DNA of 61,725 nucleotides, filler included, from Bipalium vagum (lineage: Eukaryota): assembly GCA_037834085.1 (NCBI GenBank). It is 3 parts of 3 records of this genome, joined end to end, with 100 filler letters (N's around TTAATTAATTAA, not from the genome) between each part and the next. Parts side by side here need not be neighbours in the genome. Positions count along the whole stretch, not along the records: positions 27,213 to 44,151 come from JBBMKC010085188.1; 2 more parts are not named here. The stretch is one strand, 5' to 3'. Shown piece by piece: positions 27,213-44,151 of the stretch; the first letter of the stretch is position 1; the number at the start of each line of letters is the position of its first letter. The notes below the pieces were generated by a model that did not search any database, had not been told where the DNA came from, and worked only from the letters and a program-made list of their open reading frames with translations. Both the position numbers and the translations under genes were made by a program.

Positions 27213-28284
27213 GTACGCGCACTAAATCCTTCTGAATTTGCATATATTTTATGTTAAGTTCCTAAAAAGACCACTATCGACATTCTTAATCCAATAAATA
27301 TAAAAAGTCCACTATCGATATTTTTAACCGATTAAATATTAATCAATATTAATTATTATTATTTATAATCATTTATCTTTTAAATCTCTCGTCTTTTTAA
27401 AACTTAACAAATTTAATTTATAAATAAGGAATTGTTTTCCGAAAGTTTCACAAGAACACTTCATTGTAGAGTTATTGTCTCCTAGATCAATATGGATAAA
27501 TATTACAACAATGGAAAACTTGTAAATCATGAAATTGGAATTTAACTTACAGAACAGCAAAGGGTCATAATTATAACTATATCATCGATCCCAAGATAAT
27601 CTGATGGAAATTACAGTTCAGATTTTGGTTAACTTCTGATTCACAAGAAACACTAACCAAGTAATACCCGTTCATCAATTGTATAGTAAAATAATTATAA
27701 ACCTTAACCTTATTCGTACAAGATGCAATATTTTTTGTAAAATATCTTTATAATATCACATCGAGGCAAACTAGACGCACTAGATAACAATGGAATATGT
27801 AGAAAGATCTATTTATGAAACTGGAAGAAAAATTGAATCTTATTTGATTTAAATACCATCGATTAGTCATTTGTTTTAAATAATCAATTAAATCAAAAAT
27901 AACAAGAAATATTTTAATAAAAACCTTTAAATTTTAGTTTTTAATAATAATAATAATAATTATTATTATTATTATTATAAAACTTGAAAATTATTAAAAA
28001 TTCATTTGCGAATAAAATAAATTAAAAAATAAATTTTAAATTACCGTGTAAAATAAAATTTAAAAATTTTTAATTTAAATAATATTTTAAAAATTATTTA
28101 AAGTTCTTTTAAAGTATATAATTATTTTTATTAACTTTATCTTAATAAAATCATAATTACAGATTAATTAATTATTTATTTTAAAAAGCTTTTAAAATAT
28201 TTAAAGGTTTATTAACTCTAAAATTTTGGACTTTTTTACAACTATGTTTAATACATTACTTTAAACTTTTTTTAATTTAATCCT

Positions 28285-28520
28285 TTTACTCCTCCACAAT
28301 TACAGTTTTTAAGTTTTCCACATTCCTTTTTTTTCTATCTGTCTTGAATTTTTAGCGATATTTTCTCCAGAATCCTAAGAGGGCCTAAATATTTTTCATT
28401 TTCCTTTTATCTTTCATCTAAGATGACTAATGACTTTTCCTACTTCGAACTGTCGTTTTGCTAGGTTGTTTTCGATGATTTATTTTTCATCTTATTCACT
28501 ATCGACCCATTGTTCTCTGT
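28285..28520 (-). mobile_element. Decayed Gypsy-type integrase C-terminus (GPY/F module)
   Basis: KRQFEVG..., EKYLGPLRILEKIS, RNVENLK, ending in purine-rich gtggaggag. Confidence 0.6.
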
Positions 28521-29112
28521 GTATTCTGATATCGAATATAACTCTATTTTGACATTCCTATTGTCTTTTGATTTATTTCCTTTATAATATAATCAATATC
28601 TGAGATCTTCATGCATTTTCTAACAATTATGTTATAACATTACTTTAAAAATTTTTAAATTTAGTTTTTAATTCTAATTTACAATTTACAACATTTACAC
28701 ATAAATAAACCTAATAAGTAATCTAATACAATTTTGATTGCAATTTTAAATTTCACAGATCATAATTGATTCAAATAAACAGAAAAATAAACTTCGTCGC
28801 TTTAATTGATTAAAATAAACTTAAGCATTTTAATTGATTTAAATAAACAACCAAATGAACTTTAATATTTAAATCAGATTTCAATAAAAATTTTTAATTA
28901 AATTCTTTTTATTTTAAGAATAAATTAATTAGAATTAATTAGAATAAATTAATTTAAATAAATAAGAATAAATTTATTAAATTTTTAAAAATAGACCTAA
29001 ATTTTAATAATTTATTAAAATAAGTGTAATATTCAAAAAAATTATTTAATTTCTAATTTAAAAAAATAAAATAATTTGTTTAAATAATAAAGAAAAGAAC
29101 TTCAATAAAAAA

Positions 29113-30192
29113 GTGTTCAGAAAAATAAATGGTCTTCAGAACCAATTTGAGATAAATAACAAAAATAAAAATTATTGGGTTAATCAGAAATTAGGACCTA
29201 AAAGTTTAGTGGACAACAGATTTCGTGAGAGCCGGTTCAAAAGTGAGAATCTAAGCAAAGAAAAATTAGCAAGCCGAGCAGATCGGTTCAAAGATCACCT
29301 GTCAAACGAAAAATTTACTTCCCAGAATGATTTCAACAGAATCAATACCAATTTAGATGAAACTGGGACGTGGAGAAGTGAAAAGATTATCGGTACATGT
29401 CAGAATTTGGAAAAGAAATACCTCAGGTTAACAAGATCTCCTAAACCGTCAGAGGTTCGTCCAGAAAGTGTTTTGAGAATGTCTTTGGTATACATTAAAA
29501 AACTCTGGTACGAAGACCACATCGATTATCGTCACATAAATGAACAGTTTAAAAGCATTAGACAAGACTTGACCGTTCAATATATTCGGAACGACTTTAC
29601 ATTAACCGTTTATAAAGAACATGCTTACATTGCCTTAGAGGTGAATGACCACGAAGAATTCAATCGCTGTCAAAGTCAAATAAAACTTCTCTACGAAGAA
29701 GGGGTAGTTTGTCAAGACTATTTAGAATTCACTGCTTACCGATTAATATATTACATGTTCGCCAAGGACTTTTTAAATATCAATACCACCATGGCTTCTC
29801 TACAGGAGCATCACAAGGAAAACCCTTGTCTTTCCTTTGCCTTAAAATTAAGGACAGCGTGGTCCACTAATAATTTCTATTGCTTTTTTAAACTCGCCTG
29901 TTCTGACTTTGTTCCCAAACGATGTAGGTCCATCGTTAGTTGGTTTATCGACCGTGAAAGAAAAAATACAATCAGGTCAATTCTTAAAAGTTACAGACCT
30001 CATGTGGAGATACCCTTTCTGACTAATTTGCTCGGGTTTCGAACGCGAGAGGAGTTCATTAAATTTGTTTCTTTGACAATGGTAAAACCTGGTTCCGAAA
30101 CACGCCCTCTGAAATACCTCTTTGTCAACGGTGATACCTCCAGCGACAAGCTGGATGTAAAGTCGTGCTCAGCAGCTTTTTATGATTTATAA
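29113..30192 (+). CDS. LENG8: SAC3/GANP-domain protein, LENG8/THP3-like; true 5' end unresolved
   Basis: IIGTCQNLEKKYLRLT..P.PSEVRPE.VL, EQFKSIRQDLTVQ, HAYIALE.ND.EEFNRCQSQ, EFTAYR; uninterrupted ORF with no in-frame ATG upstream of the domain. Confidence 0.9.
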   Translation: MFRKINGLQNQFEINNKNKNYWVNQKLGPKSLVDNRFRESRFKSENLSKEKLASRADRFKDHLSNEKFTSQNDFNRINTNLDETGTWRSEKIIGTCQNLEKKYLRLTRSPKPSEVRPESVLRMSLVYIKKLWYEDHIDYRHINEQFKSIRQDLTVQYIRNDFTLTVYKEHAYIALEVNDHEEFNRCQSQIKLLYEEGVVCQDYLEFTAYRLIYYMFAKDFLNINTTMASLQEHHKENPCLSFALKLRTAWSTNNFYCFFKLACSDFVPKRCRSIVSWFIDRERKNTIRSILKSYRPHVEIPFLTNLLGFRTREEFIKFVSLTMVKPGSETRPLKYLFVNGDTSSDKLDVKSCSAAFYDL

Positions 30193-30529
30193 TTGCTTTG
30201 TTATGTAAATTATTTTCTTTCTCAAAGATCGGAGATCTTGAAATATCTTTTAAAAAATAAATCTTACATCGTTTTCTCTGAGTCTTTTCAATTTTAGTTG
30301 TAGAAAGTATCACCAAGATTTCTTACTATAAGGTTATACATGGACATTTAAGACCCTCTAAAGGAAAAGTACTAATGATGTACAGAATTATATCTTTGAA
30401 AGGGGCCCTGGGTATTTGTAATGCTATTTATGTTATCCTTGACCACAGTGTTTATTCTAGTAATAAACAGCAACATTGATATGGGGACACTCCTACATGG
30501 CTCCTCTTATTGTTGGAATCGAGACGGTT

Positions 30530-31560
30530 ACGTAAAAAAAATCCTAGTGCAACAGTTAGGTATAGCTAATGAAGGGAGTTTTTCAATATCATGTATCCAA
30601 AGAATTTCAATAATTAGGAAACGCTTCAGGAGGTATACAAAGACACCATAATCGTACATACCTTCTTGCAAAGGTTGTCCAAAATTGTTTTTCATCTCAA
30701 TATTTATGTAGTTTGCATCATCAAAGAAGTTGTTCAACATATATTATTCTGTTCAGCCTTTTGTGGAAATCTTTTGTACAGTTTGAAGGTCGCAGTGGAT
30801 CCAACAGCAGGGATATGAAAAGCAGTCAGTGATTGTCGTTCCATGAAATTGGTCACAGTATTATTTCCCAATCTTCTAAGTGGTTAAAAAGAATAAACCG
30901 AAAAACCCGACATGTTATCAAGGCTGGTTCTGGACCCACCTGTACGCAAAGCTTAAGATCTTTTTGGGTTACATTAGTCTGAATGAATGCTTCAATATCA
31001 TAATTTGAAAGTTAATCTGACAATCTTGTTTTTTGAGGTATTTCTATCAGGTGGTATATGTGATAACTCGTTGTTTGGTAAGGTTTCTCCTTTGTGTTGT
31101 TTTCAGTGCTTGAATATTATCGTCAATGTTCTTATATGCTTTTCAACGGCCTCCCAAAAAAATTTTCACTTTTTCTGATTTGATGAATATAGTTTTGAAG
31201 TGAAATTTTTGAGACTTCAATTTTCCTTGTCTGGTAATAGATTATAATTTCTTAAATGCTCGGGTGGCAGTCGGTTGTTTGCTTTTATCTGCATTATTGC
31301 TTTCTTTATGATGATATTATGTGTTGCTGATACTGTTAAGGCCGACTGATGGCTATAGATCTGGTTCTCCACAAAAACCTTGTAGTTTTCATATATTGCA
31401 GTCATGATTGAAGAAATCGATCCGGGTTGGTCCAGTTTGACGCCAGTTTGTTGGTGTTGTGGCTCATGAATCCGTTCTCTATATCTTTTGACTTCGGTAT
31501 TATTCTTATTCAGGCCATTTTTTGTCCTCAGTGTGGTGGTGTGAGAAGTCACGCCAGTTT
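30530..31560 (-). pseudogene. Decayed Ulp1/C48 peptidase-containing ORF, probably transposon-derived
   Basis: Ordered motifs D*LSNYDIEAF, IIL*PISWNDNH*LLFI..LLDPL, PLQEGMYDYGVFV, with stops and frameshifts. Confidence 0.65.
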
Positions 31561-32269
31561 GTTGGATGATTGTTGGTCAAAGGTAGCTCGCAAATCTTGT
31601 CATTCCGCGGGAGAAAGTGAGTTATTGAGTGGAACCCGTCATGTCTGGACTGACTGATTGATTTTTATAACAGTTCCCTTAAGTTTTTTTTGTGTTATTT
31701 TTGATGCATGGAATTTAGCATTATCATCTGCTAACCAAACTGGGTCTTATTTTTTGAAGAGCGAAATCGAAATTGTCTAATTAATGGTATTAATGTTAAT
31801 GAATGTTCAGTGTAAAGGGATTGGAAAAATCAACAATAATAATAAATATAAAATTTTGATCAAGAAGGTCAATGCTTTCAACATGTTGAACAATTTCATA
31901 CTTACATTTGTCTGACGCTTTCGATTCATATTTGAACTATCTAAAATATTAGAGTAAAATTATAATACTCAGCGTGTTTCATAAAAACCACGCTTTTTAT
32001 CAACTCTTACAAGAGAAAAAACAAAATAAAATAGATTAATACAAACAGGAGTAGTTAAGAGTCTTGAAACGCTTGTTCATTTTTAGAAGTTAACACCTGA
32101 TGACTGTCTTGTCGTAACCTTTCCCATTTTGATTCTTTGGTTTTGCAATTTCTTCTAAAACTTTTATGAATAAAAATAAATTTGCCAAACCCCAAAGATT
32201 TAGCTCGATCTTTAATATTTTCTCCAAAACTTCGAATTTGTTAAGTCACTTTTTCTAATGACATTATTA

Positions 32270-32660
32270 AATAAATAAATTATTTATTACTAATGAAATA
32301 TATTATATTAATAATATATTTTAAAATATTATTTATTACTAAAAAAAATATATTATTTATTATTTAAAAATGTATTATTTATTACTTAAAAAATTTATTA
32401 TTTATTACTAATGATATATATTATATTAATAATATATTTTAAAATATTATTTATTACTAAGAAAATATATTATTTATTATTAAAGAAATATATTATTTAT
32501 TATTAAAGAAATATATTATTTATTATTAAAGAAATATATTATTTATTATTAAAAAAATATGTGATTTATTATTAAATAAATATATATTATTTAATAATAT
32601 TATTTATTATAATATTTTTATTATTATAATATTATTTATTATTAAATAAATATATTATGT
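32270..32660. repeat. AT-rich minisatellite (about 23-bp unit aaatatattatttattattaaag)
   Basis: Tandem copies visible, near-perfect at about 32463-32555. Confidence 0.85.
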
Positions 32661-33929
32661 TTATAATTGGAATATTTAAAGGTTTAATTTTTTTCTTTTC
32701 TTTTTCTTTTTAAAAAAATAATTAAAAATATTAATTTTATTTGAATAAAATTTTAATTAAAAAACTAATTATTTATTTATTATTTTCGATTAAATTAAAT
32801 TAACAAAAAATTTTTTTAATTAAATCGATCTGAAATGAGAAAAATCATTTACAAAATTTTAATATTGTAAACCAAGTTTTAAAGATGATTTAAATAACAA
32901 AAATATTTTTTATTAAAATAATTCTTAGTCATAATATGAATAAACATGACCAAAATGGCCAAATTTTTTGGTCGTTGCTATCACCTTAAATAATGATTTT
33001 TTTTAAAATAAATGTCATTAAATTTTTAATTTATTATTATTAATTTCTATAGAGAATCATCGAATTTGTGAATAAAACTTTCTTTAAAAAATGTAAATAG
33101 ATCGATTGAAAAAATTTTTAAAAAATTGTCTAATTTATTTATATTTTTAAAATGAAAATATAAAAAATTATTTAAAATTGTATTAGTAAAAATAAATAAT
33201 TAATGAAAAATACTTTATTTAGCATTTTTATTTGAATAATATTTTATTATTTAATTATTTATGTAACGAAACATTAATACTTGATGGTTTTATGAGATTG
33301 TTCTATTTTTAAACATTTTTCAGACCTCAATTTTAATTTTATTCTTTCAGTTTTTCTGTTTTAATTTCGAGTCTTGCGCTCACAGACCATTCTCCTCGTT
33401 AAATTTAATTTACCTTTCCAACATAAACGACGCCTGTTTTTAATCAAGAATTTTGTCAATTATTGCCCTGATAGGGCGCAGTCTGAACATTGTAATACAA
33501 TTATCGCGTAGTCACAGAATTCAGCACGAAAATAATTTCAACATTATTATTAATGTCGACTGATAAGAGGGGTTAGAAAGCAGTAGAGCTGCTGCACCTG
33601 GTTCAGCTGCTGCGAACCGAAAACAGGGACATGGAATCAAGGACACCATAAGATAAACTTGAAAATATCACAGTGCCAATGTACAGAGCTTTCGGAACGG
33701 CTTTGAACTATTTTTTTAAAATTCTACAGCATAGAAATAAAAATATTTACATTGAATAAAATCAGGTCTGTTCGACAATCGATTAAGGTAATTTTAAAGT
33801 CGAAACAAAAATTGAATTCCAAAAAATATGTTCCAAACTTTGCCCTCCCTCCTTCAAGAACTGTCTTAGGTTATCCCGAAAGACTTGGTTGTCTGCAATA
33901 ACAAAGAAAACCTTTCATTATTACACATA

Positions 33930-34370
33930 CTGTACAAATTTCTGTAAAAATAAGTTGCCATCTTTCGGGTAATTTCATTATTCCATTTTCGTAAAGATTA
34001 TTTTTTCAAGAAGAGAAAATCTTCAAGATATGTTTTATGGTTTCTCCAGAGCTTTTATTTTTAAAATCAAATTTGTTACATAGAAAGGAACAAATGGTAA
34101 TCTTTGAGTGTAATGTCTGGCATGCACTATAGATATGGAAATACATTCCATCAAGTTCCACCAATTTCGAACAAATGATATGAATGAGATGAAATATTAT
34201 ATGTGTGTGTGATTTGCGAATTCTGGACGCTTCTGTTGCAAGGAATTGATGACTTTTCATTGTGCATATATATTTTTGTTAGATGCATTGCTTCTGTTAG
34301 GTGATAGGACCAGTATACAATGATATTGTAATTCAACCTACCGGATACTGTGCAAATCAAGTTATGATTT
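33930..34370 (-). mobile_element. Decayed mariner transposase C-terminal half
   Basis: QQKRPEF, WNVFPYL*CMPDITLKDYHLFLS, YENGIMKLPERWQ. Confidence 0.8.
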
Positions 34371-35095
34371 GAATTGAAATAACTCATACTATTTAAAATT
34401 GAAAATTTTAATATTTGAATAATAAACAAGCACGCTAATTTCCTTTTTTATGATTAGATACTAAGATAATCTTATAGATCAAATGATACACAGCAACACT
34501 AAGATTTATTATTCTTTAACTAAAAATCGATAACAATGATCACAAAGCGGTAAAACTAATCACCAAATATCCCGTAAATCAATTATGAGTTTTTCAACAC
34601 TTCTCCAAATCCTATTCAGTACAATACTCCTACCTCCAAAAGATTTCCCAAGCACCCCACAATCTCGTCAAGCGATACCCTCAAAATAAATAAATCACGC
34701 CACCAATATCAAGAACGAATGACCCACAAATCCGCTGGATAATAATTATTGTAAAATTAAGATAAGAAAGTAAATTAAAGAACAAATTAAGTAATGAAAA
34801 AATTAAATAGAAAGAATATCCTTCAAGATTGGAGAACCCTCTGGATCTCTGGGCCAGCAACGAGTCGCTCACCGGGTCATTCATCGCAGACCGAGCTTGG
34901 CGGAATCCAATATTGTTGAAGAATAATGGATCTGACACATTTCTTGAATTTCACAAATTCAAATATTTCTTTCTGCAAGTTTAAATTCATTAACGAAAAT
35001 TTCCCATAAACAAAGTCGGGAAATTCTTAAATAAAATATCGCCCATAACAATAAGCACAATAAATTTTATCGGTCCTCATTTAAAAAATATGAAG

Positions 35096-35420
35096 ATCTC
35101 AATTGAAAGAAAAGATCGTGTCCAGATTATTTTGCCAACCTAACAATTTGCTGATGTTTATCACCTCCTCGTCGCATGATGAAAGGAAAAACCATTGATG
35201 TTTTAAACGTTCCCAGACCACGCCTTCAACCAACTATCCGCTTTTGATGGTCTGGTTGAACTTGTTTTTCTTGTCATATCCAATAAGGTGGTTGAAAGAC
35301 GAAAAAATTACCCGGCTTTCCATAATAGTAACATTCATTAAAAAATCTGTACATTCGCTCAAAATCCTTTCCAAGCTACAAGTATCAGTTGATATCAGAT
35401 TTAACATGCCATCGGTAGTG
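35096..35420 (-). pseudogene. Decayed tandem copy of the 3' part of the adjacent sirtuin gene
   Basis: SSCDEEVINISKLLGWQNNLDTIFSFN* vs intact STCDEAVKSISELLGWQKELNEIYSTFN*; collinear at an offset of 646-649 bp; in-frame TAG. Confidence 0.85.
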
Positions 35421-35744
35421 TTATTGACTAATTTACGGACAAATACTGAATAATGATCACACTGAACAAGTTCTGGTAAGAAAATTTAAAAGTAAAATTC
35501 CCGATTGAAATTCATTAATAAAAATCTCTACACATGAATATCTAATGAACAAATAAACATCTTTAGATATAATGAGACGATTTCAATAAAGAAATATTAT
35601 TATTCATTAAAAATATTATTAAATTTTAACGATTCTCTTTCAAATGAAAACGACATCGACTTTTTATTTATTAAATAAAATCAATTAAAAATTATGAAAG
35701 CCAACTCAACCAAATTCAGTACAATAATAGTGCCGAAAACCATC

Positions 35745-36644
35745 TCAATTGAAAGTGGAATAAATCTCGTTCAGCTCCTTTTGCCATCCTAACAATTCGC
35801 TGATGCTCTTCACAGCCTCGTCGCAGGTCGAGAGGAGAAAGCAATCTTGTTTCGAACGTTCCAAGGCAACACCTCCGACCGGTTCTTCGTTGTTGATGGT
35901 CAAGATTGGAGTGTCCTTCGCGGCCATCCCAATGAACTGGTTGAACGGTGAAACCATTAGCGAGCTCCCCATGACAATGATCAGATCGGCTTGAGCGATC
36001 TTGTCGATGTTTTCAAACACCTTCCGCGGCAACGACTCTCCGAACAGAACGATATCGGGCTTGACGAGACCTTGGCATGATTTTTTTCCAGTGCATTTTA
36101 TGTAGTCCCGGTTGGCCAGTTCTTGGTTCATTTCCTCGAACGAGAATTCCTTATTGCAGGCCAAGCAATGACCGGTTCGGAAGTGCCCGTGACACTCGAC
36201 GTTGATGGAATCTGAAATGCCGACTTTGTGATCGAGTCCGTCAACATTTTGGGTAAAATTGCGATACAAAAGACCCTTGTTCTGGAGAAGTTTGATGAAG
36301 CAGTGAGTGAGAGTCGGCTTGTACTGCTTTTCAAGGAACTCTTTGGCGATACAATAAAAGACTTTTGGGTCAATTTTGAAATAGCTCAAGTCGAACACGA
36401 GCTCGGGATTGGAAATTTTCATTTTTGACTTCAGCAGATTGTACAAACCATCCTCACTACGAAAGTCAGGTATCCCGGCAGCAGTGGAGATTCCTGCCCC
36501 GGTGAATGTAATAATTTTGCAATTTCCGTTACGGATGCGCTTAACAATGTCGTTGAGATTTTCAGTTTTACAAGGCAGCGTGACATTGTTTAATTCTTCT
36601 AATAAATTGGAAACGTCGAAGGACTTGGAACTTTTGTCGGCCAT
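35745..36644 (-). CDS. SIRT2: NAD-dependent deacetylase, sirtuin class Ib (SIRT2-like), intronless, 299 aa
   Basis: GAGISTAAGIPDFRS, TQNVDGL, HG, Zn cysteines CLAC...CTGKKSC, KPDIVLFGE, GSSLMVSPF; first ATG at 36644 (MADKSS). SIRT2 vs SIRT3 needs phylogeny. Confidence 0.9.
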   Translation of the reverse strand: MADKSSKSFDVSNLLEELNNVTLPCKTENLNDIVKRIRNGNCKIITFTGAGISTAAGIPDFRSEDGLYNLLKSKMKISNPELVFDLSYFKIDPKVFYCIAKEFLEKQYKPTLTHCFIKLLQNKGLLYRNFTQNVDGLDHKVGISDSINVECHGHFRTGHCLACNKEFSFEEMNQELANRDYIKCTGKKSCQGLVKPDIVLFGESLPRKVFENIDKIAQADLIIVMGSSLMVSPFNQFIGMAAKDTPILTINNEEPVGGVALERSKQDCFLLSTCDEAVKSISELLGWQKELNEIYSTFN

Positions 36645-37279
36645 TGAAATGATACTGTTTTGGTTAAGGTTAACGATGATTAATGGAATGACTGAATCAA
36701 GTTTGAAAGTGACATAAACTTTGTTAGTTGGTTTAAACAAATTCTGTTAAGTGTTTATTTGGATTTACTTTAGGTAATAAAAAATATTGAAGTTGATAAC
36801 AAAATTCTTAAATAAAATGAAAAATAAAAATTGTTAATAATAATGATAATATCTAATAAAAGTAATGAATCTAAGGAAATTACAAAAAAGATAAACTTAA
36901 AATTTCCAAGTCTTCGAAGCAGAAATTTAATATTTTCTATTATTATTATTATATATCATATAAGAAATTTAATTGAGAAAATAACTATGAAGACGTACAT
37001 AATGTGGTTTTATGAAGCTTTTCGGAGTTAAATATTTTCTATGAATAATTTCCAATAAATTAAATTATAAATTTCCTGTTATCTTTTTCAAGTTTTAGTA
37101 ACTGTTTTGTAAGTTCAAAGTTTATAAATACATACTTAAAATTCATGATATCAAGAATTTAATTAAAGTATAGAAATAGAAAAACTTTTATTTCCGTACT
37201 TTAAAATATATTTGAGATCTATAATAGTAAAAAAATATTAATAGTGAAATATCACTAGTTAATTGAACACCATTGTTTA

Positions 37280-37930
37280 TGAATAACTTTGTAGATTTAA
37301 TTTGTTTCTTTATTTGTCAAAGAGTTGACTAAATTTTCCAAAGTTATCTTTTCGATCTTTTCTTAGTTAAGCTGGTCTGTAAATTTCAGCTTCTCAAAAG
37401 ACTGAAATTGTCTTCCAACTATATAGACTTGACAACCAGGTTGTTCCGATGAATATTCTATAGCATTAAAGTTCGGATTACATGGGGGTCATTGCTAGAC
37501 AATAATTTAGATTTGTCTTTCTTTATTCCATTTTAAAGAGGAGCTAAAAGCATGACATAAAAAGTTATCTTGCTGAAGTATGTATCATCACTGTCTTATT
37601 TATTGAGGAAAGGGAAAAGATTATTTGTTAAGTTCTTCTAGCACACCCACCGGTTTTGATTTTGAGAAGCAAACTCAAGAGCTAACTTTTCATGTAAGCC
37701 AAAACACGAAATCATTAAGGATTCCATTAAAGTTTGTTTTCTTCAATTAATTAACTCCTCCTGTCTCAGGTCGTGCCAATTGTTAAACACCATTTGGTCT
37801 GCCTAAGTTAAATTTCTATTCATCATTCCTCATCACATATTTTCTAATAAACGTTCAAAACCATTTTAATTTTAGCCCAATACAATCGATGTTCTTTGTG
37901 TTCAGTTCTCACTAGTGGCTTTACCATAAT
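37280..37930 (-). mobile_element. Decayed Tc1/Tc3-like transposase
   Basis: KPLVRTEHKEHRLYWAK, NWHDLRQEE, LQQDN, *PPCNPNFNAIE, VYIVGRQF. Confidence 0.8.
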
Positions 37931-38556
37931 TTTCTTACATATCCTAACCAAAGACTTCTTTAAAACACTTCTTATGATCTGTTACTTAACATAAATAGAG
38001 TTAACTTAAACAAATCAATGATCATTGGTATTTTAATTACACATCAGCCTTTTAATTATTAAATTTACTTATTCTAATAATTTTATTTTTAATTTAATTA
38101 TTTTTATATCGTTACAAAGCACATTTTTTGATTAAGATTTATAATTTATATTTTTTGAATTTTAAGTTAATTATTAATAATATTTTGATCAAAAAAGATT
38201 TTATTATTAATTATTACTTTTACCAAATAATTATACACTACATTTAAAATGAATTTACAAAATAAGGAGATGCCACATGGATTTTTCATGCATAAAATCA
38301 AATTTTTTACTTTTTAATTCCTTATATTTTTCAAAATACTATTCATTGCCTAATTTTTCGTATTGCATAGAAAACTCTAAGTCCAGCATCATTGATATAA
38401 AGTTTTTTGTTTGTAGATTGAGTACGTTATACACTCTAAAACATTACATTTTTGTTAATTTGATTCTTTTCAAAAATCGAACGGCACAAAATTTGTTAAT
38501 AATAACAATCAATGAAAAGAGATCAAAACCAACTCTTTATTAAACAATACACCAAC

Positions 38557-41500
38557 TTATTGATAATTCTTCACGGTTTCATGCCATCGCCTGACGTTGG
38601 CATATTTCCCCAGCAGAGCCTCGCTGACCTTGTTCTCGTCCAAATAATACCAGAGAAGACCATCTGCTATGGTAGGCGTTTTAGAACCGGCTAAGAACGT
38701 TTCCTTGGTTAATCGCTCATTTACAAAGTCCAACGTATCCTTCACAGCCATTTTGGCACCACTTGTCGCCTGGCCATTAAGCCAGTTACACCACTGCTTC
38801 ACTAGCACTATCTCCAACTCCGTTTTAACGCCACGACAATCAACGAATCTCAACTGCTTACATACGTTCCGCTTCTGTTCCTCCGTCGTTCTTACAGTGA
38901 ACATTTGTTCCAACAAGCGATCACAAAATAGATCCTCCCCACCGGGAAAAGCCGACTCGGAAGAATCGATTGCCGTAAAGATTTTTAACTTTGAATTCTC
39001 AAAAATCAATACTGAACCCTCTCCACTGTTAACGCTGTTATCGCCTTGGCAATAATCATTCGACAATCGACAATTACTCAAAGGCAAAATGACATCGTCA
39101 ACGAAATCTCGACAAAAATCGACATCGATCGATCGGTAGGAAATCGATAAAGTCTGTTTGTCAAGCATTGATCGTTCTTTGCGAAACGATCGAATCTTTC
39201 GAACGGTTTCCATGGCCAGGTCCATATTCCTATCGATATCCGGTTGGTGGAATTGTGAATATCGACTAGTATCTGGGTACGGTGACACCATTATTGATTC
39301 TTCTTCCTGTGGTTGTTCATCCTCCATTTTCTCTTCCTGCTTACAGTCACTATTCCTCTTCATTTTGTCCGGTAATCGCTGGAACAATTCCTCCGTAATG
39401 AACGGCATTATCGGATGCAACAGGCGCAGACCGACGTCGATACATTGCCATAGCACTCGGGCAATTATCGATTTTCGGGAACCCTGTTCCGACGACAATC
39501 GGAACGGTTTCGCATACTCGATGTAAACGTCGCAGAACTCATACAACCAAAACCGATAAATCGATGTCGTTGCCGCCGAGAAATTGTACGCTCCAAAATG
39601 TTCATTCATTTCCTTGACAACCATTGCTAAGCAAGATAGAATCCATTGATCGGTGCTGGATAAAAGATTTTTGTTATCATTAGTTTCTTTCTTCTCCAAT
39701 CGATTTTCGATCCATCGATCACTATCTTCATCAATCGATATCGACCCCGAGAACATTTGGCAGAACTTGAACGCCTGCCAGATCTTGTTGCAGAAGTTCC
39801 GATACCCCTTGACCCGCAATACATCCAGATTGATGTCACGAGCCTGGGATGTGTATGCGAGCAGTGCAAACCTTAGTGCATCTGTTCCACACTGGGGAAT
39901 GCCCTGTGGGAAGTCTTTGGCCTGGGTAGCGCGAGCCTGTGTCAGTTCGCGCTGGTCCAAGTTCCCGTGTTCTAGTGCTGCTTGGAGCGCCTCCAGAGTG
40001 ATTCCGTGGATGATATCGTACGGGTTGAGAACATTTCCCAATGATTTGCTCATTTTACGACCATGGGCGTCGCGGATCATTGCGTGCAAATACACAGTAT
40101 CGAATGGAAGCCGTCCTTTCATCATTTTTAGGCCGATCATGACCATGCGAGCAACCCAGAAAAAGATTATATCATGTCCTGTTTCAAGGAGATTGCCCGG
40201 ATAGAATTTTTCGAGGTCAGCTGTCTGATCGGGCCAACCGAGCGTTGCAAAAGGAAATAGTTGCGATGAGAACCATGTATCCAGCACGTCCGGGTCCTGC
40301 TCCACTGTCACGTCGGCCGAGTCTCTGCCGTACTTTTGTCGAGCTAGCTCCAGAGCTTCTTGTTCCGATCGAGCAGCAATCCAGTCCTCCTCAGGCCCCT
40401 GGTCGTGCTCAACTTTGTATTCCTCTGATTCTTTTTTACCATTTTCCGGTATACCTGCTTCGTTTCTCCTCACGACCCGGTACATAGGGATCCGGTGACC
40501 CCACCACAGCTGGCGAGAGATGCACCAATCGTGACAGTCTTCCATCCAACGCTGCCAGACCAGATCGTGCACGCCCTCCGGCAGCAGCTTCAGCGTTCCG
40601 TCACGTACCACTCGCAGTGCTTCCGATGCCATGTCTTGGCATCGCAAGTACCATTGACGCTTGATCATTGGCTCAATGATGTCCTTGCTCTTGCTGCATA
40701 CAGGGATAACCATGGCGTTGTCGGTGGTGCGGTCGAAGAGGCCAAGCTCGACCAATCGCTTTTCAACAGCGCGTCTGGCGTCGAACCGCTTCATACCGCT
40801 GAACTCACCGTAGCCGTCGCAAACCCGACCGTCGTCTGTGAACACGGTGACGAATTGGAGCCCATGTCTCATGCCCACCTCGTAGTCGTTATGGTCGTGT
40901 GCAGGTGTGATCTTGACGGCCCCCGTCCCAAACTCACGGTCCACAAACTCGTCGCAGATGATCGGTATCGAACGATCGGCTACAAACGGATGACGTGCAA
41001 AGCGGCCCTGTAGGTGCCAGTAGCGATCATCGTCAGGGTGGACGGCAATGGCCGTGTCGCCCAGCATCGTCTCGAGACGCGTCGTGCCCACAAAAATCTT
41101 TTCCTCTTCATCCCCGGAAGAAGTCCCGGTTCCGATGACCCGGTATGCGAAGTGGGACATGGTACCGAACTCGATAGGCCGCTCGTACCCTGGTACGGTG
41201 ATAAAGGTACGCTTCGCGATTTCGATTTTCTCTACTTCGATGTCGCTGATTGCTGATCGCAGCGAGCATGACCAGTTGACGAGGCGCTTCGACCGGTAAA
41301 TGAGACCGTCTCCGTGCAGTCTGATAAATGTTTCCACGACAGCCCGGTTCATTGACGCATCCATCGTGAAGCGTAGTCGAGTGAAGTCACAACTCGAGCC
41401 CAACTGTTTCAGCTGGTCGATGATTTGGTTGCCCTTGTCCTGCTTCCAGCGCCAGATCTCCTCCACGAATCTATCCCGGCCCAAATCGTGTCGCGTCTGG

Positions 41501-42069
41501 TTGCGCTCCCGAAGTATTTTCTTTTCCACCACCGTCTGTGTAGCAATCCCCGCGTGGTCTGTGCCTGGCAGCCACAGCGTTTGCTTGCCCAACATCCGGT
41601 TCCAGCGTACGATTGTATCTTCAATGCTTATGGTTAGAGCGTGTCCGATGTGCAAAATTCCCGTCACGTTTGGCGGCGGAATCATGATAACGAACTTCTC
41701 ATTGGATTTCTTTTCGTTGTATTCCGGTCGGAAATACCCCTGGGCTTCCCACCAGCTGTGCCAGCCTTCTTCAGTGTACAGAGGACAATAAGTCTTTGGT
41801 AACTCTCGCTCTACGTCTTTCTTGGTGCCCACAGGCGTGCTGATGTCCACTTTTGTTTTATCGGATACTTTTATGGTGATTTTCTATTTTTATAAAGATT
41901 ATTATTTTTAATGATTATCGCAATATTTTTTTAAAGTCTTTACTTTGTCAACATTGTTCTTGAATTTTGGCTTATTTAGAAATTTCTGTAATGTTTCCGC
42001 TTTCTTTTTCTCTTTTGCAAGCTTTTTTTCTTCCTTTGAAAGTTTTATGTTACACGCAATTTTTTCCAT
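38557..42069 (-). CDS. VARS1: Cytosolic valyl-tRNA synthetase with C-terminal GST-C-like domain; exons 42069-41944 and 41883-38557
   Basis: PPPNVTGILHIGH, DHAGIATQ, TTRLETMLGD, GTGAVKITPAHD, DWCISRQLWWGHRIP, KMSKS. A 60-nt GT-AG intron (41943-41884) joins a Lys-rich ATG exon (MEKIAC...VDK) in frame. Confidence 0.96.
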
Positions 42070-44151
42070 TGGCTTAATTTGTTTTCAAATATTATTTAAA
42101 CAAACATTTCAAGTGTTGTAATTAAATTATTGATGCTAAAATAAATGTTTTATATTGATGTATCAATTACTGTTAAAAATTGAGAAAATTAATTTAATGA
42201 ATAATTTAATTTAATTTAAAAAATTAAAATTAATAAAGAAAAATTAATGACTGAATAAAATATTTTTATCACTCAATTTAAAAAAACTTACTCAGAACTT
42301 ATTCATTAATTTTATGAGGTATTTCAATAAATAAAAAATTATTTATGTCAAATATGTTTAGATCTTAAATAAGATAAATTAAAAGTTTTAATTACAATTT
42401 TTCGATGTGAGATTTCACGATAAAATATTTCTGAATTCTAAATTAATATGCCTCGGGATGTCATATTTCTGTTAAATATTTCATTAAGATTATTTAATCT
42501 GAATAGGATTTATCTTTTTTCCGAATTTAACTTCTTCGTCCTTAATTTTTTTATTTTAGTTGAAGCTAAACTTGAAAGAATGAGTCCTAACTTTCTGGAA
42601 CTTAACTGGGTTCTAGTTCGATCATTATATTTTATGTCACTCCTCTGGGGTTAAAAAATTTTTTTAATCCAATGTTTCCTATATTTTCTTTTGATCTCAT
42701 CTCATTCATCTACCAATCTAAGATGAAAACATATTGACATGTAGTATAAAAAACTCATATTTTGTGCCCATTCGTCATTCTTAATAATAAAAAGGTTATG
42801 ATTATAACAGAGATAAAATCTTAAATTAACATTCTATCTGTAATCGGTTAAAATGGACTTTATTGTCAAAGAAATTTTTTCCTCACCTTTGAATTGAGAG
42901 ATTATTCTTGTCTTTAATTAAATTTTATTCAGTTTGAAAATTGTAATATTACCAATATTATTAAGTGGCAATAAACAAATTTCTTTATTGTGCTGATTTT
43001 TACTTATGAATCTTCTTTAAATCTTTTGAAGTCAGGTTTCATTTTAACTTATAATAAATTAAATAGATTATAACTCAAAAGAATACCATTTGAGTGAATA
43101 AACGACTAGTAAAAATGTTTTTGTTAAAGTTTATATAAAAATTAAAGTTGTCTGTTTGAAAGACCATTCATTAAAAGTAAAATAGAACTTGAACCTCAAA
43201 GAAACATCACACAAAGTAAAATTTTTGCAATTTTTCGAAAGCCATGATATTTTTGGTCATTTTGAGTCTAATATTGAAAAGATTCTCATTGTCTTCATAA
43301 AAGACAATGAAAAATTTTTTATTAAAAATTTTAGTTTTATTTTAATAAGTGATCTACTTCATGGAAAACTAAGATACTTGACATTAGTAACTTTCATTTA
43401 CTCCTGTATTCTATATTACCTTGTGGATCCTTCTTTGCACTCTTTCATCCCAATTTTTAATTTTAGATGCAAGTAGAATAAGAAATTCAACCTGAAGACC
43501 ACCACCCAACCATAACATTTTTTCAAAGAATTTACGACTGGTTGAGATCTTCACCCATCATTTTTATTTGTAGGTTAGATCATGTATACACATCAAACAA
43601 TTTATTTTCTGAAAAAATAGATGAAAACTGATATTGTAAATTTTGTAAAAAAGATATTTTAAAAAACAAAAGTCATCATAAAGGTACGATAAGCTATGAA
43701 AAAAAATAAACAAAAAGCAACAAGAACAACCAAAAAAGCCACACAACTTTTCATCTATTTACATATATTTAAATATTTTGAATTTTATGTATAAAATGTA
43801 TTAGATGAATTTGTAAACGAACTAAATAAAATAAATAATATTTTAACTTCAACAGTCAAAAAGACAAGTAATTATTATAAAGATGAAAAAATAATATTTG
43901 AAGATGAAAAAATTAACTATTCAAAATAAAGAAAGTGAATATGTTAAGTTTTTGCTTAAAAGGTTGATTCTACAAGAACTTAACAAAATTTCGACTCTCA
44001 GAAGGGTTTACGGATTTGAGACCTTTTCGATAGTGATGATTCTTCTGCGCGTTCAAATATGAATAATTGTATATATGATTCGTCTTGGTATTTGATCTTT
44101 CTACGATGACTATCTTGCTATTCTATTTCTTTCTGCCTGCTTTACCTAACC

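Follow-up and report, generated by a model that had tools for sequence, protein, structure and literature searches.

A predicted flatworm-type valyl-tRNA synthetase with an AIMP3-like GST-C domain at its C-terminus and no detectable coiled coil

Glutathione S-transferase (GST)-like appendages serve as connectors of the multisynthetase complex (MSC), and which aminoacyl-tRNA synthetase carries which appendage largely sets the composition of the complex. AIMP3/p18 (EEF1E1) is a GST-like scaffold that links methionyl-tRNA synthetase (MetRS) to EPRS in the animal MSC. In Thermus structures of valyl-tRNA synthetase (ValRS) with its tRNA, a coiled-coil arm touches the elbow of the tRNA, and efficient charging depends on it. 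Here we describe a ValRS gene in a stretch of 61,725 nucleotides from Bipalium vagum (GenBank assembly GCA_037834085.1), hereafter the window. The reading frame of this gene continues past the anticodon-binding region into a domain resembling the C-terminal subdomain of AIMP3 (GST-C), and no coiled coil is detectable in the encoded protein.

GST-like domains mediate MSC assembly (PMC4394549). In the human complex, those of MetRS, AIMP3, EPRS, and AIMP2 form a heterotetramer held together by two kinds of helix-helix interface, and interface 2 involves helix alpha7 and the alpha4-alpha5 loop, both in the C-subdomain (PMC6760448). Human AIMP3 (PDB 2UZ8, 4BVX, 4BVY, 5BMU) shares with the window tail a Q-W helix start, an L-x-G...T-L-A-D N-cap, and the N-V-x-R-W motif, and both would be non-enzymatic GST-like domains of the translation apparatus. 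AIMP3, however, is a free protein of 174 residues with an N-subdomain, whereas in the window only a C-subdomain is detectable, fused to the ValRS C-terminus. Vertebrate VARS1 is likewise a ValRS with a GST-like protein-binding domain, which mediates association with the EF1 complex (PMC4394549). That domain is N-terminal, comprises both GST halves, and is EF1B-gamma-like, whereas the domain in the window is C-terminal, shows the C-subdomain only, and is AIMP3-like. A 2015 review places the GST domain of ValRS at the N-terminus and confines it to deuterostomes, and leaves the presence of ValRS in the Caenorhabditis elegans MSC unexplained (PMC4394549). C. elegans has no p18, holds ValRS within its MSC, and carries a p43-like domain fused in cis to MetRS (PMC4394549). 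It offers a precedent for joining an MSC auxiliary protein to a synthetase in cis, and for ValRS entering an MSC in a protostome without free p18 (PMC4394549). The C. elegans fusion differs in being a p43/EMAPII-like tRNA-binding module on MetRS, and the ValRS of that species retains the coiled coil and lacks any GST-like domain. A literature search found no published description of a C-terminal GST- or AIMP3-like domain on ValRS, in agreement with an earlier inspection of this DNA (the sequence-only reading) that knew of none. The architecture is present in public trematode gene models and falls within the known theme of GST-like synthetase appendages; the form without a coiled coil, seen in the window, is the more unusual feature.

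The minus-strand open reading frame (ORF) at 38557..41850 encodes 1097 amino acids counted from its first GTG. Residue numbers below refer to this ORF, and all ValRS features lie on the minus strand. All peptide strings quoted in the sequence-only reading are found in one frame of it, and no stop occurs between the anticodon-binding region and the C-terminal end, KNYQ. Upstream of 41850 the frame remains open as far as an AG acceptor at 41884-41885. From translation and direct reading of the DNA, we predict a first exon at 41944..42069, with an ATG at 42067-42069 and 42 Lys-rich codons of the eukaryotic tRNA-binding type, a motif similar to the Lys-rich N-terminus of the flatworm ValRS consensus. 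It is followed by a GT donor at 41942-41943. The predicted intron (41884..41943) is 60 nt long, AT-rich, and frame-preserving, with GT..AG ends (GTAAAG...AATAG). Exon 2 (38557..41883) carries the remainder of ValRS in a single open frame down to the stop codon at 38557-38559, and a candidate polyadenylation signal, AATAAA (38536..38541), lies 15 nt past that stop. Exons 1 and 2, once spliced, would encode a metazoan cytosolic-type ValRS of 1150 amino acids.

Several measurements bear on whether the end of this frame is coding. Not one of 20000 composition-preserving shuffles of the final 195 codons came out free of stops, and the other five frames of the same stretch hold 5-15 stops each. GC content is 0.44-0.48 in the tail versus 0.26 directly past the stop. 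Because of the shuffle, stop-count, and GC results, together with the AATAAA, we take the tail to be coding sequence and not read-through, as the sequence-only reading had proposed on finding the frame to run without a stop into a GST-C-like tail. Only one public run contains this DNA, and it may be the one from which the window itself was assembled; a contig from it, assembled separately, is identical to the window over 38300-39500 and shows no indel. This makes an assembler-made frameshift or join in the window unlikely.

The body of the predicted protein is that of a complete synthetase. The class Ia catalytic core with its editing insertion (39823..41763) matches Pfam tRNA-synt_1 at E 2e-137 over residues 30-676 and tRNA-synt_1_2 at E 9.5e-9. 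The HIGH (residues 67-70) and KMSKS (residues 599-603) signatures both fall in invariant alignment columns. The anticodon-binding helical domain (39142..39651; Anticodon_1, E 7.5e-33, residues 734-903) is followed by a junction region, residues 904-962 (38965..39141). In an alignment with 13 metazoan ValRS this region ends in the conserved strand K-I-F-T-A-I-D (residues 955-962), behind which other ValRS carry the coiled coil. Among database proteins, metazoan ValRS come closest, with 50-59% identity; the 5.8-billion-protein collection does not include the ValRS protein of the window itself. The Pfam scan and the translation gave no match to an N-terminal GST domain, leaving the Lys-rich extension as the only N-terminal addition, as described in the sequence-only reading. 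By its predicted protein, the gene encodes a cytosolic-type ValRS of a fast-evolving animal related to flatworms.

Past the junction, the protein continues into a pre-core linker of ~43 residues (963-1005; 38836..38964) and then an AIMP3-like GST C-terminal subdomain of ~92 residues (1006-1097; 38560..38835). The latter carries the motifs V-K-Q-W..W, F-L-A-G-S-K-T-P-T-I-A-D, and N-V-R-R-W. Pfam GST_C_2 matched the isolated 138-residue tail at 25.1 bits against a cut-off of 24.9, which is marginal; inside the full-length protein the same family scored 20.5 bits, under the cut-off. Arc1p_N_like, GST_C_3, and GST_C gave weaker matches on the isolated tail.

The same tail occurs in public trematode ValRS gene models. 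We considered seven digenean models (1285-1311 amino acids) from Schistosoma, Trichobilharzia, Opisthorchis, Paragonimus, and Calicophoron, with six of the loci checked in DNA. All seven possess the C-terminal extension, and trematodes and window share one order of tail motifs: V-K-Q-W-L-S-W, (F/Y)-L-x-G-T-x-x-P-T-x-A-D, and W-(L/F)..(L/I)-K. In BLASTP against Schistosoma japonicum ValRS (1295 amino acids), a second local match joined the last 90 residues of the window protein to the last 120 of the fluke protein. Homology of the window and trematode tails was also found by hmmsearch (14 bits, E 1.5e-6) and when hhalign compared a profile of the trematode tails with the window tail (E 1.2e-6, probability 91%). 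No GST domain is listed for trematode ValRS in the precomputed Pfam annotation.

In the trematode DNA, the GST-C core is a single exon of ~100 codons at all six loci. In all six, this exon starts at one shared alignment position, no more than one codon from an AG acceptor (exon starts L001:27173, L002:23824, L003:51208, L004:59889, L005:74907, and L006:38015). Because this start is common to the six genes, a conserved intron marks the module boundary. The exon before it is stop-free from the second coiled-coil helix through the first ~45-65 residues of the extension and ends G-G-(D/K/E)-(Q/E), then GT. Since the coiled coil and the beginning of the tail thus share one stop-free exon, the trematode fusion is genome-encoded and not a product of merged annotation. 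These genes retain the coiled coil upstream of the tail (weak PF10458 matches in two schistosomatid sequences). The survey of related ValRS C-termini, which the sequence-only reading had called for, shows the tail in 7/7 digeneans as well, but trematode proteins keep the coiled coil, unlike the window. The idea of a fusion private to this genome has to be abandoned, and so does the idea that GST-C replaced the coiled coil at fusion, given that trematodes have first the coiled coil and then the tail.

Trematode ValRS thus resembles the window protein in its GST-C core motifs and their order, its Lys-rich N-terminus, and its lack of an N-terminal GST. It differs in keeping the hairpin, in a longer pre-core segment, and in a large acidic insertion. 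This insertion is a poorly conserved, acidic or low-complexity stretch of 45-60 residues (residues ~990-1050) at the junction, ahead of the strand from which the coiled coil follows, and it is missing from the window protein and from other animals. Trematode ValRS genes also have many long introns, whereas the window gene has a single intron of 60 nt. In the monogenean Cichlidogyrus casuarinus, the ValRS model (1165 amino acids) has a coiled coil followed by a shorter tail, the last ~90 residues, which keeps the Q-W..W motif without the L-x-G...T-x-A-D part, either because it has degenerated or because the gene model is incomplete.

To place the domain among known GSTs, we built a tail alignment from the window tail and the six trematode core exons (A4), which contains nine invariant residues. 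Searched against PDB, its profile found human AIMP3/EEF1E1 best (E 1e-7, 35.5 bits), over AIMP3 residues 66-152. Behind it came a delta-class GST (23.5 bits), EPRS-GST (19.8), EF1-gamma (19.0, E 0.013), AIMP2 (15.2), and MetRS-GST (12.5), so that AIMP3 stood at least 12 bits above any other GST in PDB. A profile from trematode tails only (A8) also put AIMP3 first, at E 9e-4 versus 0.029 for the next GST, a lead of ~5 bits. Language-model features of the S. japonicum tail lay closest to EEF1E1 clusters (0.92), which is a lead and not a test. AIMP3/p18, named in the sequence-only reading, is accordingly the closest solved relative by sequence profile; the assignment of the tail to a GST-C subdomain is likewise borne out by the GST_C_2 score, the profile match, and the fold searches that follow.

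The predicted structures agree on the fold. The AlphaFold2 (AF2) model of window residues 960-1097 has seven helices at a predicted local distance difference test (pLDDT) score of 70.7. Foldseek, which had been suggested as a check together with AF2, returned two AIMP3 chains (5BMU and 2UZ8, E ~1e-2) at the top and GST folds throughout among the matches listed. With VIA-align, the same model gave Z 8.7 for the yeast GluRS GST-like domain, 8.2 for AIMP2, and 7.5 for AIMP3. The Trichobilharzia core exon was modelled with higher scores (pLDDT 90.1; predicted template modelling score 0.84) and was searched by VIA-align, with no Foldseek prefilter, against 48161 PDB representatives. GST C-subdomains made up 48 of the 50 best chains, Z-scores reached 10.2 across the full model, and the model aligned in its entirety to residues ~85-200 of GSTs. 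Its Z-scores were 10.0 for yeast GluRS-GST, 9.7 for EPRS-GST, 8.9 for AIMP2, 8.7 for EF1B-gamma, and 8.4 for AIMP3. The yeast GST-like domains of Arc1p, GluRS, and MetRS (PDB 2HRA, 2HRK, 2HQT) are thus top or near-top structural matches, but their sequence match is much weaker than that of AIMP3 (E 0.1) and they are N-terminal domains. The T-I-A-D motif, the N-capping box of the GST-C fold with its helices alpha4-alpha8, is kept in the tail, and the AF2 models are all-helical. On these models, the tail is firmly predicted to adopt the GST-C fold; its closeness to AIMP3 is a matter of sequence profile and not of structure.

Typical metazoan ValRS end ~75 residues past a conserved C-x-(V/I)-x-L-x-L-x-G-x-I-D strand, and those residues form the Val_tRNA-synt_C (PF10458) hairpin with its P-x-Y-x-x-K-V-P loop. 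The window ValRS gave no Pfam match to PF10458 at E<=1 and lacks the hairpin-loop motif, in keeping with the failure of the sequence-only reading to see a coiled coil. Among controls, the PF10458 arm is present in ordinary metazoan ValRS and weak in three flatworm ValRS, two from schistosomatids and one from the monogenean. Where other ValRS have the 66-residue coiled-coil hairpin, the window protein has the pre-core linker, modelled by AF2 as two short helices (12-25 and 31-41 of the 138-residue model) at pLDDT ~61-65. This linker is weakly colinear with the segment that precedes the core in the trematode exon, at 8% identity. Because only ~43 residues precede the GST-C core, with neither a loop motif nor a PF10458 signal, we conclude that the hairpin is missing from the predicted protein; one short helix at most could be a remnant. 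Three multiple alignments by MAFFT were set aside. With many canonical ValRS added to the tail (A6), their coiled coil attracted the GST-C core, a misplacement that would have biased any structure prediction made from it. With full-length proteins (A1, A3), pieces of the weakly conserved first half of the tail ended up at various places along the enzyme.

In a maximum-likelihood tree of 40 ValRS, built on window residues 1-905 with the tail excluded, the window protein shares a clade with the monogenean and six trematodes (Shimodaira-Hasegawa-like approximate likelihood ratio test, 99), to which it is sister. Because the tail is shared with trematodes and the tail-free tree gives this placement, the AIMP3-like module was probably gained once, in a flatworm-related ancestor and independently of the vertebrate N-terminal GST. 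The coiled coil would then most likely have been lost later, in the window's lineage, after the tail was gained. Long-branch effects and the narrow taxon sample may mislead this history.

Most likely, the tail is a non-enzymatic docking module with no detectable thioredoxin-like half. It would pair with another GST-like domain, of the MetRS, GluRS/EPRS, AIMP2, or EF1B-gamma type, through helix-helix interfaces, and such pairing would anchor ValRS in cis in a multisynthetase or elongation-factor assembly. Interface 2 of the human heterotetramer lies inside the C-subdomain, and therefore a module consisting of the C-subdomain only could still pair with a partner GST-like domain. The Lys-rich N-terminal extension may substitute for the coiled coil by binding tRNA non-specifically. 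A more far-reaching scenario can be put forward only tentatively, and we lean against it. In the flatworm-related clade, an AIMP3 gene would have fused to ValRS and turned ValRS into a built-in MSC subunit, possibly with loss of the free AIMP3; in the window's lineage the docking module would have made dispensable the coiled coil, which is conserved universally and binds the tRNA elbow, with tRNA(Val) held by partners and the Lys-rich N-terminus.

Taken together, we consider it probable that the window gene encodes a flatworm-type ValRS with a C-terminal AIMP3-like GST-C docking module and a lost coiled coil, and this full account explains the data best. A number of observations weigh against it. 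Phmmer of the window tail alone against PDB ranked an insect delta-class GST (E 6e-4) above AIMP3 (E 0.05), and for this reason the AIMP3 assignment leans on the profile. Structural Z-scores do not set AIMP3 apart from other GST-like domains, and most trematodes do not conserve the Arg that AIMP3 and the window have before the C-terminal Trp. No trace of an AIMP3-type N-terminal subdomain was detected: a profile of the pre-core segment (A5) found no GST or AIMP3 in PDB. Neither the window protein nor the isolated tail matched a Pfam GST_N family, the thioredoxin-like glutathione-binding half. With two short, low-confidence helices before the core, no GST_N match, and an empty pre-core profile search, we do not expect the protein to act as a glutathione transferase. 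Neither the tail nor its profile found a significant relative in collections of 1.8 and 5.8 billion proteins, so that the family link rests on PDB-sized searches; given the short domain and the size of the databases, such empty results are weak evidence. Within these searches, the full protein with words from residues 900-1097 found no match in the 5.8 billion proteins, and the A4 profile found none at E<=0.01 when run on the short proteins of that set. The tail alone found two matches among 1.84 billion representatives, both internally repetitive proteins with 9-13 matched stretches, which we judged spurious. The very long branch of the window protein in the tree (0.93) and its deviant composition make its exact placement uncertain. 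Finally, that the transcript uses the whole of exon 2, tail included, is a prediction from the DNA.

The phmmer ranking and the Z-scores raise the possibility that the tail is GST-C-like but not derived from AIMP3, being instead a relocated N-terminal EF1B-gamma-like domain of ValRS or a captured fragment of a catalytic GST, with a resemblance to AIMP3 that reflects only the shared sequence style of translation GSTs. The VIA-align scores of GluRS, EPRS, AIMP2, and EF1B-gamma equal or exceed that of AIMP3, and a hidden Markov model of the trematode tail weakly matches the N-terminal GST of a vertebrate ValRS (6 bits, at V-R-Q-W-L-S-F and L-A-D). We nevertheless find such an origin unlikely. Both the combined and the trematode-only profiles put AIMP3 first, by 12 and ~5 bits, over the whole AIMP3 GST-C (66-152); the two top Foldseek chains for the window model are AIMP3, and the language-model (Atlas) features point to EEF1E1 clusters. 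It is also conceivable that the tail lies outside the mature protein, with 3' splicing or polyadenylation ending the mRNA earlier, and that the open frame is a decaying remnant or a small gene that happens to be in frame. The public runs matching the window DNA include no RNA run, the sole match being assembled contigs not recorded as RNA, and GC and GC at third codon positions (GC3) fall towards the 3' end of the gene. This seems very improbable to us, however. The shuffle result excludes a chance frame, and GC stays coding-like up to the stop, beyond which it is 0.26 and an AATAAA is found. Moreover, nine core residues are invariant across the window and six trematode tails although the enzyme bodies are ~50% identical, and a trematode exon joins coiled coil and tail.

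Similarly far-fetched is the proposal that the GST-C domain is real but a functionless leftover on a degenerating ValRS paralogue, while another ValRS gene does the work. It could draw on the long branch and deviant composition, on the loss of the tRNA-binding domain, and on the fact that the visible portion of the genome is 17 kb, so that further ValRS paralogues may exist elsewhere. Against it, the catalytic signatures and the editing and anticodon-binding domains are intact over a frame of 1150 codons, and the GST-C core motifs are kept. If the AIMP3-like docking module is what it appears to be, it would represent a second, independent wiring of ValRS into translation assemblies, and an instance of a scaffold protein joined in cis to a synthetase. 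Work on anthelmintic drugs already targets aminoacyl-tRNA synthetases (PMC5091859). With the tail present in trematode ValRS too, an assembly domain specific to the parasites could be of practical interest.

Two neighbouring genes lie in the same part of the window. A 359-residue ORF at 29113-30192 (plus strand) matches SAC3/GANP at E 5e-20, with an overlapping CSN8/PSMD8/EIF3K (PCI-type) match, and probably encodes a THP3/LENG8-like mRNA-export factor. At 35745-36740, ~1.8 kb downstream of ValRS and on the same (minus) strand, is a gene for a Sir2-family deacetylase of 331 residues (SIR2, E 5e-54). Directly 3' of it, a stretch of 75 codons (35108-35332, minus strand) is 44% identical to the sirtuin C-terminus, which points either to partial tandem duplication or to a paralogue whose last exon this is. 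In five trematode genomes a convergent MRP-L28 gene lies ~100-160 bp past ValRS, and the window has no such neighbour. Across positions 27213-44151, coding blocks have a GC content of 0.42-0.57 versus 0.10-0.27 in intergenic DNA, with the 1-kb interval 32213-33212, for example, at the extreme of 0.10. Within the ValRS gene itself, GC3 is ~0.7 in the 5' half and 0.4-0.57 in the 3' third.

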